Origin: Syncephalis fuscata S228
Taxonomy: Eukaryota; Fungi; Zoopagomycota
Direction: 5' to 3'
DNA: 64,000 nucleotides
Assembly (NCBI GenBank): GCA_025786725.1
Contig: JAHLTZ010000006.1
Span: forward strand, 744,001-808,000
Shown: in pieces, positions 1-40,984 of the stretch
Position numbering within the stretch: the stretch's first letter is position 1
How the letters are laid out: every line of letters starts with the position of its first letter
The notes under the pieces: model-generated
The model's input: the letters and a program-made list of their open reading frames with translations, nothing else
Databases searched by the model: none
What the model was told of the DNA's origin: nothing
Translations under genes and position numbers: made by a program

Positions 1-179
1 AATCAATCCTTAAGTGGAAATCCCCCCAGTTTTTTTAGTTAACAAATTGCAAACCAAAACCAAAACCAAACAAGTAGATCCGGAAACAAGACCTTGGCCA
101 GAATAGTCGAGGAAAACCAATTGGGGCCAACTTCAAAAAATAGTGATGTGTAGCATCATTCAAAAGAAGATGGCCCCGC

Positions 180-321
180 GTGAAATTTATATAGGTGTAT
201 TTTACGCAAAAACGTGGCAGTCCATTCGTTAATTTGGAAAACTCCAAATATAGTGGAGAGCAGCGCAAATTAGCAAAATTATGCGCAGTGGGGCTCACAA
301 GCTCTTCGAAATAAAATATAA
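180..321. repeat. ~140-bp diverged direct repeat, copy A (intronic in the micro-exon gene)
   Basis: gtgaaatt...acgcaaaaacgtggc...gcaaatt...ctcacaagctcttcgaaataaaa matches 1485-1633. Confidence 0.75.
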
Positions 322-325
322 TGCT

Positions 326-826
326 ACTTACATACTGTTATAATATTAATTTGATACAAACAGTACATGGATATAATCAGCAAGTAGTTAGTTCATATAC
401 AATACAACTTACTAGCTAGTAATATTAAATTATTAATGCACACGCAATACATGGATGTAATTAGTGTATAGTCAGTTAATATGGAATATTACTTGCCATC
501 TATTCCATTAAGTTATTGATACACATAGTGCACGATATATGATTAATTTATAAATTATCAACATATAATACAACTTACAGCCTATTAATATTAAGTTATT
601 GATATACACAGCACATAATATATAATTAGCCAATGCTTAATTGATATACAATATAACTTACATTCTATTAATATTGAGTTTTTGATAAACATGATGCATA
701 ACATGTGATTAGTGCATAATCAACTAATATACAACACAACCTACTTTCCGCTAATATTAAGTTGTTGATAAATACAGTACATAATATATAATTAGTATAT
801 ATTTAGTTAATATATAATATCATCGC
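326..826 (-). repeat. Degenerate tandem array, ~6 units of 81-84 bp; each unit is one intron plus one micro-exon
   Basis: Recurring + strand motif caacttac-NNN-ctattaatattaagttattgata...acataatatataattag at ~331, 412, 496, 578, 661 and 744. Confidence 0.85.
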
Positions 827-1825
827 CAACCAAAAGAAATAAGGAATGGCGGAGATGACGAATGATTGAGGAAAAGAGATGCTGTTAGAAAACAAACGAT
901 TAATATCAGTAGAAAAAGAAAAAGATGTACAGATTCCAAGTCAAAAAATAACAGAAAACAGAGACAAAAGTTATATGACGATGGAAGACGTGGGAATAAC
1001 AGTTACAAAAAGCAACCAAACAAAAGAGGATGGTGCAGGCAAGTATAGGCGCGTCTGCAATCAGCAGTCCAAGAATTAAAGTAATGGGCACAGCGCAGAG
1101 TAAATGGAATCAGACACAAAAATACAGCCAGAAACAATGATAGTATTAAGAAAAACAAAGAAAATAAAATGAGATAATGACAATCATGTAGGCAATAATA
1201 GCCAATAAGAACAAGTATAATGATTTCAGATAGCCAGCTCATACCGGACGCAGTAGAAAGAGGCGGAAATGCGAAGCAGAGACTGAAAAGTGAAAAAAAC
1301 GAGTATGACAGAAAGGAAAGCCATGACGAAATTGAAACAGCAATAGCCAGTAATTAGGTATCCTCAAGTGTTAAAGAAGTTCTGTAACAAAGGCCAAAGC
1401 CAGTAGAGCCATAGGCAAATAATACATCCAAGATTATATCAAATGGAGCTTTGGCAGAGCGTCAGTTAATATAACGGCCTTAGTGTGAAATTAATAGAAC
1501 TCAGCTTCACGCAAAAACGTGGCGGTCTACTTAGTTTTAAAAACGCTGTACATTTAGCAGAAACGGAGAAGCAATGCAAATTCTCAATTATATGTAATAG
1601 GGATTCACAAGCTTTTCAAAATAAAAATAAAATAAATACAATACCACTTACTATCTATTATAATTATTGTTTAGAAATACTATTAGTAAATAAAATGCTA
1701 TGCCATATTTATTGATATTGCAACATACCACCACGACGAACTAAGGCTGGTTTAGCATCAACCATGGATGTACTAGCTACAAGCGCAACGGCAATGGTGC
1801 AAACGACGGCAATGGAAAGCTTCAT
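332..1825 (-). CDS. Secreted peptide micro-exon gene (signal peptide + array of 3/6-nt exons); 3' end lies beyond the window start
   Basis: Exon 1 (1825-1729) encodes MKLSIAVVCTIAVALVASTSMVDAKPALVRRG+g and ends at a GTATGT donor. AG/GT(GC)-bounded micro-exons follow: 1654-1652 ATA, 750-745 CGGAAA, 664-662 AAT, 581-579 GCT, 499-497 ATG, 415-413 CTA, 334-332 TAT. The spliced frame stays open (..RRGDTEKCYAI..). Confidence 0.7.
830..1450 (+). mobile_element. Decayed LTR-retrotransposon integrase-like relic inside the long intron of the micro-exon gene
   Basis: Purine-rich, frame-broken sequence. Fragments NGIRHKNT / QPETMIV resemble integrase GIxHxxT..HPETNG, and RLKSEKNEYDRK resembles the post-core helix. 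Confidence 0.35.
1485..1633. repeat. ~150-bp diverged direct repeat, copy B
   Basis: gtgaaatt...acgcaaaaacgtggc...gcaaatt...ttcacaagcttttcaaaataaaa matches 180-321. Both copies sit just inside a minus-strand GTAAGT donor. Confidence 0.75.
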
Positions 1826-2099
1826 GGTGATATTGATTTGTTAAGACAAACAACTAAAAGAGATAGTAGAATGTGGCTGGTATAGAGTGGTAGGTAGTGG
1901 GTGTATAGCAAGAAGTAAAGTGTGATTGGTATAAAGTGGAGAGTAGTGTGTGTTTAGAAGAAAGTAGAGTGTGATGATGATATCGCAGTTGGTTGTGTAT
2001 ATTTTGTGGGCTATTTAAATCTATGGTTATGCTGAGGTACTGGTATACTGTAGTATACGAGACATACGATTGATGTGTAGTATGAACCAATAAAACAAT

Positions 2100-3100
2100 T
2101 CAAATAATGATTGAAATACACATGTACCAATAGATTTGTGGCATGACACCATGGTTCCAGTCTTGATTTCAACCTGCCCGGTCTTTACTTCAATCTACCA
2201 TTCATTTACACGGATAACACAGCAATAGTAATAATCCAGCACATATGCGATAAAAATAGACATTCGCCTGTATTTTTGTTACACAGTCTAACTATTTGGT
2301 AAAAACAAGTATGTTGTTTGGTTTTGTAAACACAGTAAAGACGCCTTTGCTGCCATTTCTACCGATTCGGTCCTCAATGTCTGCATGCATACAAGATAAC
2401 AGACAGTACTGGTGCAAAAACAAGTTTAATATATCAAACTGGCATTTTTATACACACTTTTACTGCTGTACATAGGTCAGCCATAATTTTTAAATTATAA
2501 GTGTATTGATTGGTACATGTATACATTTCACTCGACACTATGCCCATTGTTATCGGGTAATCATTGCTTTGAATTCGCAAATGCATCAAATCCAGGCATA
2601 TCGTACTACATGTTGTGCAACTGCTATCATTCAAATGACGACTAATTCAAATCGCCTGAAATTGGCTATACAATAAGTACTGTTTGTAGCATGATGCATC
2701 ATGGCATTTTAAGCAATGGAACATTTCAACAAACTATTCTCGCGATCAGTTTTCAATTGTAAACTAAATTACATTGTCTAAATTCTATGCAATGCAATAT
2801 GCAGACGGAGACTGGGTATGTCAAACAATTTTAGTCAAATATTATCAGCTTCGAGTGCATAATGGCTGTGGATCGTATATCAACCGGCAATCATTCAAGG
2901 CCCAAGTGCTGTTCACATTTTTGAAGCCACTTCTAACAAGTTAAGTAAAATGGAATGTAAACGAACAAATCAAAGCAGAAACCAATAGAAAAGTATTGGC
3001 AGCTCAAAACTTACTGGTTTAGCTTACAGAAAATCATTATTGTTATACCATGTTAGACTGCGTTCATCAAGCAGAAACATTGTACATAGCATTTAATAAA
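2100..3100 (+). mobile_element. Decayed Ty3/gypsy pol relic (RNase H to integrase)
   Basis: Broken-frame fragments occur in the expected order: IYTDNTAI (RNase H IYTDHxAL), IQAYRTTCC (integrase zinc-finger region), and ADG..TGYVKQ (QTDGQTERVN-like). Confidence 0.4.
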
Positions 3101-8018: not shown

Positions 8019-9019
8019 ATGCCAATATACTATAATAACGATGTTTTGGGATTTGGATGGCAGAAAAATGCCACAAAAATACTAGGAATCCCATTACATC
8101 CTTTTGGAGAACTGGACTCTACAACTTTCTTACTACAGCAACTAAATACAAATAATTTCAACGGCTACGCAATCGGTGTCAACAACCAGTTGTTACTTAA
8201 TACAATAGTTGGTTATATATTCTTAAGAAACTCGATTATAGCTGTTAGAATGATCATCGAGAGACCGCGTATTCTTTCCGGCTGGTTTTGTTTAATATCA
8301 TCATTATCCGGCGTTAGCTGGGTCATTTGTGTGGCCATGGGGATACTTTACGCCATTTTAAATTGTCGAGGTGTAATTTGGTGGCTGGTTTTCAGCCTCA
8401 CTATATCATCAATAAGCAACTGTATGATCGTATTGCAAAAAGCATATCTAGTACTATTCCGTAAGCGTTGGATTCTAATCGTTGGTATTATATCTACCAT
8501 ACCACAAGTGGCCATTTTTATTATTACGTGGCGAGTATGCCCAATTATTTATGCTCTTAATCGCGGATGTACATTCTATTATCCTCCATATCTCCCATGG
8601 ATTTGGATGGGCGTCGAAGCACCTAGCCAGCTAATGTTTTCGTCGATTTTCTCATATGTTGCATATAAGCAGTATCAAACATTTGGCTCTAATGCATGGA
8701 AGCGACTGGCACGTGACGGAATACAAACCTTGTGTTTGGTGATTCTGTGCAAACTGTTATGCGGATTAATCATTGTATTTGATATTTTTGGTGGGCTTTC
8801 TGAAATGTTTGTTCTTGTTGATTGGTAGGTAGAATGACATAAAGCTGTACAACAGACTTACGCCATTGCTTTAGGCTCGTGTCTTCAACAGTTTTAGTAT
8901 ACCATTGCAGAAGTATGAGAAATACAAGCAGTTTATCGAATAAGCCAAAAACGTCGCATATACTTCACCTTTCTCAAATTGTTACTGCTAGTGAAACCGT
9001 TTACCACGAATACAATTGA
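8019..9019 (+). CDS. Seven-transmembrane GPCR-like orphan receptor, copy 1 (2 exons)
   Basis: Seven hydrophobic segments, Cys at the start of TM3 (NCRG) and in loop 2 (RGC), LQKAY after TM3. One intron at ~8825-8874. Confidence 0.8.
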
Positions 9020-9658
9020 GCATGTCGAAATACTGGACTGGTTATAAATCGTATTCTGCGACATAACAATTATTTGTGTACACGTTAAATATACTGACTA
9101 ACCAACAAAATCAACATTAGCTGAATAAAGAATTGTACAATGTATTGTTGTTAATGGCAAATACACAATAAGTTCCAGCTAAGCTAATTATTTTTTGCAT
9201 AAATCCATTGATTCTAATTTACTGTAACCAAAATCGGTTTACTAAATTGCGGCTATCACAATGTCAAAATAGCAACCTGCATGTTATTGCGCAGCCCAAA
9301 CTATATGGAAGCCACAGCCAATCAACAATGGGACATACATGTGCTACTCATGTCTCTGTGTAATATGGCATAGTCCTCGTCTGCCTACTTTCGGGTTTTC
9401 GTTTGTTGTTTTGCCACTGTTATTGTAAGCATCACTTCCATAATTAACTGCCGCTTTAGCGCTTGTGCTACATATTAGCGATGGGCAGCGCGGCTTTTAC
9501 AAGAATATTCCATTTCCTGACAGAACATGTACAACTGTTTACTAAAAGTAGCTTTAAACACCCGGTTTTTTGTTTATTCATTTATTCCCAGCACTGTTTT
9601 TATTATTCCATGCTTTTCACTAATTTTTACTTAAAATTAACACCTAAGATTGCCATCT

Positions 9659-10707
9659 ATGCCTGTAAAATATGATGATCAAGATTTGGGAGTGGGTTGG
9701 CAACAAAATGCCACTTATCTGTTTGGCATTTTATTGCATCCACTCGGTGAAATAGAACCCATTGACTTTTTGCAAAATCATTTAAACGGCAAAGATTTGG
9801 TCCAGAGTCTTGTTGGACTTCAACGCCAAGTTGTATTCGATGTGATTATAGCTTGCTTATTTGCAACCAGCTTTAACACCTCCATTCAAATGGTGATCAA
9901 ACGGCCGCGTCTCCTCAAAGGATGGCTCTGTCTAATTCCATCTTTGTTTGGCGTAAGTCGGGCTTTGTGCGTAATGGCAGCAATGTTGTTTTCTATTGTA
10001 CCGTGTCGAGTATCCGTCTGGTATTTGGCATTTTGCCTTACCATTTCCTCAATAAGTAACAGTGCGATTATACTACAAAGGCATACCTGGTGCTATTTCT
10101 TCAACGCTGGGTTTTGGTTCTTGGCTATGCATTTACACTGCCTCAAACATCTATTTTCATTGTCACGTGGTGTTTTTGTCCAGCTATATACAACATCGAT
10201 CGAGGATGTGCCTTTTACTATCCACAATATCTTCCATGGATTTGGATGGCCACAGAAGCTCCCAGTCAAATGATGTTTACATTTATTTTCTCTTATACCG
10301 CGTACCAACAATACGTAATGTTTGGTGCTGACGCTTGGAAAAAACTTGCACGTGGCAGAATACAAATTATGTGTCTGGCAATATTATGTAAGGTAGTCTG
10401 TGGCACAGTCGTTGTATTCGACATATTTGGTGGATTTTCAGAGATGCTTGTTCTTGCTGATTGGTAAGTGTAATAAGCTGCTTTACGCAAAATATTATTT
10501 ACATGCATTGTTTTGATTAGGGTGATATCATTAACAATTTTAGTGATGCATTGCAGCAGTATTAAAAAAGTTAAGACTACTATTACTCGTTCGAAAACAA
10601 ACCATATGCAGAACATCTCTCTTGTTGACGTTGTAAAGAATGTTTTTGAAAAGAGACGGTTTAAAGTCCATCGTCGTAAATCATCCGATATATTACTCCC
10701 GCGATGA
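9659..10707 (+). CDS. Seven-transmembrane GPCR-like orphan receptor, copy 2 (apparent 1-nt deletion at ~10078)
   Basis: Colinear paralog of 8019-9019 (GWQxNAT, LHPxGE, YLPWIWMxxEAPSQ, AWKxLAR) with the same intron position. CAAAG in place of CAAAAG breaks LQKAY. Confidence 0.8.
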
Positions 10708-38062: not shown

Positions 38063-38260
38063 AAGAATAAAAGTTATTTACCCCCAAAACTACTCATTAT
38101 TATAGAACATATATTCAGTATAATGGCGAATGTAATAAAAGATCAATTAAAAGAACAAAAGTCATTTTACCCCTAGAACCACTCATTATTATAGAACATA
38201 TATTCAGTATAACAGCAAATGTATTAAAAGAATAAAAGTCATTTGACACCAAAAACCATT
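38063..38260. repeat. Local tandem repeat, ~2.5 units of ~80-88 bp
   Basis: aagaataaaagt(t/c)att...actcattattatagaacatatattcagtataa repeated. Confidence 0.8.
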
Positions 38261-38438: not shown

Positions 38439-40984
38439 TTACCTTTTAAAGCGCCTTCTTGTTGAGACGGCACTTTCGGATGGAAGCACCCGTTTGGCTA
38501 CGCCTTGTGTCTTGTACTTAGAGTAGCAATGGCGTTTTGGTTGGCATCGTCGTTTAAACGTAAGCGACGGCCACCACCGCTTCTTTACAGTTGGTGTAGC
38601 TATAGTTGTAGATGTAGTTGTAGCTGCTAGTACTGGTGATGCTGGTGACGCAGTACTAATTGTAGGCACCGTTGGCGTGGCTGGTGCAGCTACTGTTGCT
38701 GGAGCAGGTGTAAGCGTTGTTGTTGTTGGTGTTGTTGATGCCACTGGTGTTGATGCCACTGGTGTTGTGGAGCAGGTGTAGGCGTTGTTGCCACTGGTGT
38801 TGTTGATGCTACTGGTGTTGATGCCACTGGTGCTGTTGGACCTATTTGACTTGTGGAGGCTTCTTCAAGTGGTACATCTGTATCTATTTGTTCTTCGCTG
38901 TTAAACCAGCCACAGTTTAGCGCACTCTCAGCGGTGTAGCGCGTGCTACTGTCGACATCAAGTAGCCCCTTCACTAAGTCAATTGCTATGCAATATTAGC
39001 TATTGTTAATAAATAAATGCTTTACTTACCTTCACGGCTGAATTGGCTTAGCTCTTATTCAAAATCAACTGGATTGTCTAATATACGTTCAAGACAAACC
39101 AGTGTATCATTTGAATTGCTATAGGGAAATTTACCTATTTATAATATAGAATAGTTAGTATTTTGTTTTTATTTTTGTTTGTACTTACCCCGTAGCATTA
39201 CGTAGAGCATGACCCCCAAGCCCCACATGTCAATGGGTTTGCCGTACCCATTGACGTCAAACGGCGCCGAGGTTAATTGCCGGTGCATTCCTGGAACTGC
39301 TTTGGCACGCTCCAGCAACTGGTGCCGTTGATTGGACCATAATGACGCTTCAGGCGCCATGTATGGTACGGAGCCACAGCAAGTGGGCCACTCGGAGGAA
39401 GGCTCTATGAAGTGAGCCATCCCAAAGTCAGTATATTTGACCTTGGGATATGGGCAATCCTCAGATAACATGATGTTATCCAGCTAATTAGTAGTTAGCA
39501 CAATGCTTGATATTAATTTAATAAATTACCTTAATATCTAATTAGATAGTTAATAATAATGATAATGATAATTAGTAAATGTATTAGCAAATAATTAAAT
39601 ATACTTGCCGCGGTGCACGATATTATTTTCATGCAAAAACTATTGTAATGTTAGTATTTTGATTAGTAAACTTTAGTAATACTTACCTTCGCGCCTTCAA
39701 GTAGTTGCTTGAAGATATATTTTACTTCCATCTCTGGAAGGGGAAGGTGGCATTAACGTAATGAAAGAGATCACCGCCTGCCATGTACTGGATCACCAAG
39801 TACGTGTTCAGGCTGGTGATCCCTCCTCGTAGACCCCGTACAAAAAGAGAGTGGTTTCCAACCGCGTGTAAAGCGCGGACCTCTCTTTTGTAATCCTTAA
39901 AGTCATGGCAATGCAGTGAGACCTTCACCGCAACACGCTCGCGCGTCTTGCGGTCTATCCCAAGCTTCACTTCGCCAAAACTGCCCCTGTTATAAATGAA
40001 TAGTTAGTTGATTGATTTGCCTAATTTAATTACTTACTCCCCAAGGGGCTGATCGTTTGTAATCATCACCCATTTATTCAACACCTATGGTATTGATAAA
40101 ATTGGCACATTAGTAATATTTAAATAGGCTTATAAACTTACCTCTTCGTATTCTTCGCCTTCTTCTATTTTCATAGGTAGGCAACGTTCAATGACATGAA
40201 CATTAAGCGTTACTATTATACAGTATTAGAAGCAATAATAATAAATGATATTTACTACTTACTTTCACCATTGGGTGTTCCAATGGTACAATCTCCAGTA
40301 ATTGTTTGTGAATCATTAGCAAATAATCCAATTCCATCAACTAAACCAAATGTTAGCAACTTTGTTGATATTACTATCTAAACTAGCCTATTAATACTGG
40401 CAGTCCAACATTCTAGATTGCTAGTTAGTAATGAATGTGGTAAATAGTCATTTACTTACTGTACAGCTAACAGTGCCATTGTTCTATATAATACACCATT
40501 AAAAACAGTTTATGAAAGTATATGCTGTACTTACCACTAAGATTTCAAAACAGCGATCTGGCATAGGAACTGCAGTTAAACAATAGTCACTAGTAATACA
40601 CATATAATGTCAGCTTATTTCTTTATAGATTTCATACTGCTGAATAGTTACCAGCAATTACTAGCTCCAATGGTGTAATATTTGTTTTTAACAATATGTT
40701 TGCTTAACGACTATCATTAGCCAACTATATGCTCATCATAAACTCAACTTACTCTTAGACCCTGCCTCGTATACTTCAGCCCAAGCAGTTATACCGGTAC
40801 GCTCTTCTTCAGATAAAACATTCCAGCAATTTGGAATGTTTGAGTACATCAGATCTTCATCACTTAAAAGATCTGATGGCAGTTCTACGGGAACTGCCGT
40901 CGGAGTATGTGGGATCGAGCCCCCCGTAAAGACAAAGGAGGTAGGAATAGAAATGGATATTTGATCAAAGTTCAAAGATGTCAT
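38439..40984 (-). CDS. CAMK-group Ser/Thr kinase (Chk2/Mek1-like) with Pro/Thr/Ala-rich tail
   Basis: GSFGEV, VAVK, HRDIKLDN, DFG, GSVPYMAPE and DMWGLGV. PVAST repeats in the tail, with a frameshift. N-terminal exons are uncertain (possibly a degenerate FHA). Confidence 0.88.

Follow-up and report, generated by a model that had tools for sequence, protein, structure and literature searches.

Syncephalis fuscata belongs to a genus of obligate parasites of other fungi (PMC6784888), which do not parasitise humans, animals or crop plants, and carries a family of about 200 micro-exon genes for predicted secreted, cysteine-rich peptides, the mature parts of which would be assembled from exons of three or six nucleotides. 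The window, our term for the whole 64,000-nucleotide stretch analysed here, very probably holds the 5′ part of one such gene, 5.1 kb long, within this large family; splicing would include every exon, and new variants would arise at the level of DNA. Judged from sequence, the array of tiny exons is a real, coding and family-wide feature, an architecture well supported by coding statistics and by intronless copies.

Anatomy of the window gene

The features of the gene and its flanks, in window coordinates, are as follows.

1729..1825, minus strand: exon 1, 97 nt, signal peptide and short propeptide; ends in phase 1, with an invariant RR (putative Kex2-type site)
1655..1728, minus strand: intron 1, 74 nt, GTATGT...TAG, conserved throughout the family
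1652..1654, minus strand: micro-exon ATA, 3 nt
751..1651, minus strand: intron 2, 901 nt, a repeat intron with an older insert of about 800 nt near its 5′ end
745..750, minus strand: micro-exon CGGAAA, 6 nt; acceptor 3 nt more upstream than in 3-nt units
662..664, minus strand: micro-exon AAT
579..581, minus strand: micro-exon GCT, which completes the first Cys codon
497..499, minus strand: micro-exon ATG, followed by a GC-AG intron
413..415, minus strand: micro-exon CTA
332..334, minus strand: micro-exon TAT
335..744, minus strand: five repeat introns of 78-81 nt, forming the ‘AT-rich tandem repeat’ of period 83
starting left of 332, minus strand: intron after TAT, 450 nt, running out of the window
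1..322, plus strand: body and tail of a tRNA-headed SINE, antisense in the intron after TAT; the head, which is shortened, falls immediately outside the window on the left
1357..1449, minus strand: intronic stretch taken as exon 2 by NCBI model KAI9597818.1 (BDF19DRAFT_420694)
1826..3070, minus strand: 5′UTR and promoter region, common to the family for at least 1.2 kb
1878-1975, minus strand: 49-nt tandem duplication in the 5′UTR or proximal promoter, shifting the −220 motif to about −270
2076-2093, minus strand: conserved promoter motif within the shared upstream region

In order, the introns measure 74, 901, 80, 80, 79, 81 and 78 nt. An earlier note, made from the letters of this DNA, had described the 3- and 6-nt exons, exon 1 and the ATA exon, with the donors and acceptors that we find. 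It had also spoken of one codon per exon, which is not the case: exon 1 breaks off after the first base of a codon, which puts every intron in phase 1 and makes each 3-nt exon complete one codon with two bases and open the next with its third. Nor is every micro-exon different, as it had held, since repeats (GGA-GGA, ACG-ACG) occur further along the gene. The leftward extension that it had proposed for finding the terminal exon took us part of the way, adding 15 further 3-nt exons (locus L031) and the family 3′UTR motif at C328:740667-740684, a position that makes the gene 5.1 kb long. We estimate 37-40 micro-exons overall. Joined, 22 exons of this gene give an open peptide with four cysteines spaced x3, x5 and x3; the gene taken alone is not significant, being open in 50% of shuffles, so the proof of coding rests at family level.

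The insert in intron 2 (window positions about 830-1630, roughly 800 nt) starts with a SINE-type tail, recurs at the same position in two other loci (L038 and L042, 80% identical), contains no open reading frame and is possibly a truncated partner element. The N-terminus of KAI9597818.1, a Syncephalis fuscata protein, is identical to exon 1; the junction of exon 1 to 1449-1357 in this model, which omits the micro-exons, is most likely a mis-prediction.

One exon further along the gene, in a G-run at C328:742013-742025, is 2 nt long and reflects either an assembly error or a real frameshift. Together with the three long inserts in the introns of this copy and the damage seen elsewhere in the family (stop, frameshifts or lost acceptor, as in L047 and L041), it would suit a real family whose window copy is a pseudogene. 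We consider that unlikely, although worth keeping in mind: 22 exons are open with regular cysteine spacing, and the promoter and 3′UTR motifs are both intact. In addition, exon-1 frameshifts in L023, L041 and L052 and several 2-nt matches in other arrays also fall in homopolymer runs, which suggests indel errors of long-read sequencing.

The rest of the window holds a cytochrome P450 gene (5200-7250, Pfam PF00067), whose introns are of an ordinary kind, 56 nt long and without relation to the repeat, and two copies of a Syncephalis-specific membrane protein family (8019-10467), the second split over two frames; this family has 27 relatives, one of them named 7TM GPCR by its source. Ordinary genes between 13363 and 58986 include those for a class 3 lipase (13363), a 5′-nucleotidase (15755), an SH3 protein (18158), a GATA factor (24891) and a GAS2-domain protein (55921). 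Positions 38063-38231 and 38694-38838 contain an 89-nt duplication and a short coding-like repeat with units of 15-18 nt.

Extent of the family and evidence for coding

In the 29-Mb genome we count 233 copies of the start of exon 1 (none in the control) and 161 of the family 3′UTR motif. The genome scan for arrays that the earlier note had suggested was productive: AAYAG-NNN-GTAAGT gave 3,450 matches against 46 in the control, while versions with an exon of two (93 against 77) or four nucleotides (90 against 80) stayed at background. The genome thus holds at least 3,450 three-base exons, a lower bound. Sixty fetched loci merged into 51 genes with about 1,045 micro-exons, 987 of them (94%) 3 nt long, 55 of 6 nt and three of other length; the 6-nt exons lie mostly near the peptide start and have their acceptor 3 nt more upstream. 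Read from sequence, a complete gene starts with the shared promoter and the signal exon; between 14 and 40 exons follow, all in phase 1 and 3 or 6 nt long, and then a terminal exon, whose stop comes within three codons, and the shared 3′UTR.

Family members have at least 1.2 kb of upstream and at least 0.7 kb of downstream flank in common, and this shared sequence has no abrupt end, pointing to copying at the DNA level. A transposon carrier is unsupported: we saw no sharp boundary or terminal repeat within 1.4 kb upstream or 0.7 kb downstream. Two pairs of near-identical family genes stand inverted on one contig (C1:475325 / C1:534381 and C1:575193-576244 / C1:609505-610559). When 985 short introns were compared, nearest neighbours were mostly 80-100% identical. 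As for the CTAAT-type branch point described previously, a CTRAY motif is indeed present in 804 of 978 short introns, but it lies about 27, 45 and 54 nt from the acceptor, so that sequence alone leaves the branch point unfixed.

Profile searches with exon 1 returned matches from S. fuscata only (17 of 17 and 15 of 15), with no homologue beyond this species; gaps in annotation may conceal relatives elsewhere. Eight proteins (P0031, P0035, P0037, P0040, P0042, P0043, P0044 and P0047) combine the same signal peptide and RR leader with unrelated cargo, which in P0043 is an SVWC (von Willebrand C-type) domain (Pfam E 5e-7). The arrays of L050 and L035 encode Pro-rich peptides with no or two cysteines, in recently amplified, near-identical units.

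Coding statistics were computed on 41 non-redundant genes, with exon order shuffled within genes as a control. Of 926 exons, 925 have a length divisible by three, and intron lengths fall in all classes (341/177/327). Adjacent exons joined in phase 1 produce one stop in 884 junctions, against 52.3±5.3 after shuffling, while phase-2 control junctions produce 78 against 79.5 expected; reading frames 0 and 2 were rejected on these junction-stop statistics. Forty of the 41 genes are open in genomic order and 11 after shuffling. The single junction stop belongs to L047, a gene whose start codon and terminal acceptor are altered too. Cysteine makes up 16.6% of the joined products, and 154 Cys codons are formed across junctions where 73 would be expected by chance; C-x2-C-x3-C opens 20 of 38 products, and the prevailing spacings among 108 are 2 (29 cases) and 3 (45 cases). 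These statistics agree with the earlier reading of a secreted-peptide gene whose mature part would be assembled from 3- and 6-nt exons, and the full-inclusion mRNA, with all short introns removed and exons joined in genomic order, is very probably the target of selection.

Divergence among paralogs varies by part: 19.8% in micro-exons, 8.9% in intron interiors, 2.3% in the signal exon, 1.5% in donors and 0.2% in acceptors, so that the claimed conservation of splice motifs relative to the rest of the unit holds. A stricter, unit-matched comparison gave 12% for micro-exons against 6% for introns, with pN of 0.17 and pS of 0.17 at non-Cys positions (few sites) and pN of 0.03 at Cys. Cysteines are conserved and the remaining residues free; positive selection was not shown by dN/dS, with non-Cys dN about equal to dS (0.17 and 0.17, few sites). 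The introns may be homogenised between copies.

Annotated proteins add to this picture. NCBI model P0046 matches the genome contiguously from residue 34 on only, the residues A-K before it being non-contiguous; the gap to exon 1 fits three introns, so the model appears to be joined across tiny exons, and we infer that it is transcript-based, with the next intron retained. P0029 and P0032 consist of the family leader and a Cys-rich peptide in one contiguous stretch of genome, and the three intronless proteins that we read (these two and P0041) have the same cysteine frame as the array products. Products joined in order score higher against them than shuffled ones, with means of 30.8 against 17.3 for P0029, 32.9 against 18.3 for P0032 and 27.3 against 19.3 for P0041. 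From paired ATG, promoter-motif and 3′UTR-motif coordinates we count some 16-20 intronless copies; just 269-344 nt separate ATG and 3′UTR motif in nine, and about 12 have the −220 promoter motif at its usual distance. Those with promoter motif and 3′UTR include C240:2569, C308:180587, C345:42395, C268:174399, C35:125320, C40:13590, C143:5248 and C212:183162. Three intronless copies are identical at the protein level (P0029).

We find it scarcely credible that only exon 1 and the intronless copies are functional and that the splice-like motifs of the array belong to a non-coding satellite. The array does resemble an 81-83-bp tandem repeat and the NCBI model of the window locus passes over it, but a satellite cannot account for the cysteine frame, the match to intronless copies, exon lengths in multiples of three, or stops that are lost from a single frame and in a manner that depends on exon order; on these four counts it is refuted statistically.

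Probable intron loss, SINE insertion and exchange of units

Like processed retrocopies, the intronless members lack introns and have a contiguous coding sequence; the upstream promoter motif, of a kind usually absent from such retrocopies, is present in about 12 of them. Some copies would have lost all their introns in situ, reverse-transcribed mRNA probably having recombined with the gene; the SINE described below shows that a reverse transcriptase has been active, which makes cDNA-mediated intron loss plausible. The signal-peptide tree lacked resolution, and the three intronless proteins never grouped together in it.

The opposite direction, in which intronless genes are ancestral and an introner-like intron invaded their coding sequence codon by codon, strikes us as quite improbable. 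Hundreds of near-identical spliceosomal introns are a hallmark of introner-like elements (PMC4457414), and the promoter motif that the intronless copies retain is usually missing from true retrocopies. Against invasion, the repeat intron is seen inside this family only (in the search of the 64-kb window and among the best genome matches), the spacing is strictly 3 nt in a single phase, and the nearest neighbour of an intron often lies in the same gene (136 of 985). Each of the three ungrouped intronless proteins is also nearest, or tied nearest, to an array-bearing gene, a weak indication in the same direction.

Twenty-eight introns are long: 25 contain a single antisense insert of about 410 nt, in some cases with a truncated head, and three the older 800-nt insert. 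A tRNA-like head, called as such by relaxed ARAGORN in about 18 of the 28 inserts, and an (AATAA)n tail mark the 410-nt element. Intact target duplications of 15-18 nt that match the host intron's own variant flank 12 of the 28, so these insertions were independent. Entry is always about 20 nt past the donor; the duplication usually begins behind a GTAA that it does not include, so that no second donor is created. The genome has 38 near-intact copies of the SINE, about 30 of them within family genes by position; since loci were partly fetched with a SINE-containing query, the SINE share among fetched loci is inflated.

How, then, do the peptides diversify? The earlier note had suggested exon skipping, and a schistosome-like system, in which alternative skipping of symmetric micro-exons is the main source of diversity and yields many peptides per gene, has points in its favour: all exons are symmetric, so skipping preserves the frame; 401 of 786 single skips (51%) keep all cysteines and their short spacings; and schistosome micro-exon genes are described as diversifying in this way (PMC5825161). 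The junctions speak otherwise. Skipping one exon gives 54 stops in 843 junctions against 49.8 by chance, and for skips of one to four exons alike the stop frequency is that expected by chance, so selection has not been protecting skipped products. Among the single skips 30% cost a cysteine and 7% introduce a stop. Splice sites at both intron ends are uniformly strong and conserved, and exon symmetry is fully accounted for by in-frame duplication of units. We therefore think it very unlikely that skipping is the main source; low-level skipping in the loops could be tolerated.

Change at the DNA level was read from a nearest-neighbour map of the 985 introns. A run of six units in L056 is 95-100% identical to six units of L008 shifted by one register, and the flanks on either side match at 80-90%. 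L051 contains a duplicated six-unit block, L029 equals L030 minus seven units, and L027 has extra units relative to L009. The pairs L022/L024 and L039/L043 are near-identical over 10-12 units and then diverge. In the window gene, most loop-region introns are 80-97% alike but resemble the first five at just 62-78%. Whole 81-83-bp units are swapped in blocks, duplicated in tandem or deleted, always in frame.

Recombination between repeated introns, rather than exon skipping, is on this comparison most likely the diversifying mechanism, and new peptides would arise by unequal crossing-over and gene conversion, with Cys codons held as units are exchanged between paralogs. One unit of intron plus exon amounts to one codon and the introns are 70-100% alike, so residues could be gained, lost, duplicated or swapped without a frameshift; since about 97% of each variable region is one repeated intron, any two of the roughly 200 genes could swap, add or drop residues in frame. 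A more ambitious reading, attractive although we stop somewhat short of calling it probable, is that the array is an evolved system for diversification at codon resolution: a combinatorial peptide library held in DNA and expressed through up to 40 consecutive splicings of 3-nt exons, with successful peptides sometimes frozen as intronless copies via cDNA and a SINE specialised on one safe site in the repeat.

Known systems and the predicted peptide

In schistosome micro-exon genes (MEGs), exons are mostly 15 nt (6-36, up to 81), introns span 0.1-5 kb, and the variants of about 35 genes come from alternative splicing (PMC5825161, PMC10526429). The S. fuscata genes share with them a signal-peptide exon followed by short symmetric coding exons that form most of a secreted, fast-evolving parasite protein, and they too are missed by automatic annotation (PMC5825161, PMC10526429). 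Their exon and intron sizes differ, with 94% of exons at 3 nt and introns all copied from one repeat of 78-80 nt; the genes number about 200 rather than about 35, and skip junctions are unprotected from stops. The convergence proposed earlier is borne out, in that all profile matches come from S. fuscata, with neither sequence homology nor a flatworm lineage, and the guess at a parasitic fungus fits S. fuscata, a mycoparasite.

Isolated microexons of 1-3 nt are known from Coprinopsis cinerea, those of 3 nt amounting to 27 exons in 26 genes (PMC12230235). They show that a fungal spliceosome can include 3-nt exons; they are single and sit in ordinary genes, whereas S. fuscata has up to about 40 consecutively and at least 3,450 per genome. 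Introner-like elements of Dothideomycetes and Micromonas comprise hundreds to thousands of near-identical spliceosomal introns (PMC4457414), a likeness that extends to the 985 short introns compared here. Those elements are scattered in unrelated genes, whereas the S. fuscata introns seen here stand in tandem, 3 nt apart, within one family, and spread by duplication of intron-plus-exon units. We found no repeat intron outside the gene in the 64-kb window, and among the best 40 genome candidates we saw it within the family only.

The family also recalls the conotoxin, defensin and nodule cysteine-rich superfamilies in its conserved signal exon, dibasic site, cysteine frame, hypervariable loops and large size. 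In those superfamilies one or two ordinary exons suffice for the mature peptide, and nothing resembles one unit per codon. The S. fuscata genes are thus MEG-like in layout and conotoxin- or defensin-like in precursor logic, yet members of neither group. The feature is apparently undescribed: in literature largely outside subscription journals we found no account of the S. fuscata system and no fungal equivalent, in keeping with the earlier note.

The signal peptide was judged by eye, as a hydrophobic N-terminus conserved in all copies. By analogy with known pathways, cleavage after VDA and Kex2-type cleavage after RR would release a peptide of about 30-45 residues. Structure and similarity searches used intronless proteins as stand-ins for the mature peptide, and L031 for Rfam; neither peptide nor array had a match in Pfam, PDB sequences, ESM Atlas, Foldseek or Rfam. 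For P0029, the mature part gives a helical model (H12-22, H29-34, H41-44; pLDDT 62), and its weak structural matches (Z 2.3-3.0, rmsd 1.9-2.9, 32-35 residues) include small Cys-rich entries: nigellin-1.1 (2nb2), vicilin-buried peptides (9q1l, 6o3q) and BWI-2c (2lqx). These hint at a disulfide-stapled helical hairpin, and the peptide may fold as such a helix-loop-helix. The Z scores lie within the chance range for helical pairs, there is no sequence homology, and the C-x3-C of the known hairpins differs from the first motif in S. fuscata, mostly C-x2-C-x3-C.

Secretion, family size, variability and lifestyle suggest that the peptides may act on the host fungus or on competing microbes. Alternatively, they could be signals for mating or self/non-self recognition instead of weapons against the host fungus. 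A small, hypervariable, disulfide-held helical peptide with Kex2-type processing would suit some pheromones as well, those of ciliates for example, and the genome has an expanded lineage-specific membrane-protein family, with one member named 7TM GPCR and copies at 8.0-10.5 kb of the window. About 200 dispersed and very different paralogs per genome fit an arsenal better than a mating code, however, and the weak fold matches are plant defence hairpins; signalling is the less likely reading, though a serious one. Predicted secreted peptides of a fungus that attacks other fungi are candidate antifungal leads, and some 200 of them are missed or mis-modelled by current annotation.

The genes represent an extreme architecture, with thousands of 3-nt exons, up to about 40 of them consecutively, in which the spliceosome's handling of successive exons too short for exon definition, and the order in which it takes them, can be tested. 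They also offer a natural case of protein evolution by single-residue units through intron repeats, with probable intron loss in the same family, and suggest that other ‘AT-rich satellites’ in early-diverging fungi may conceal genes.
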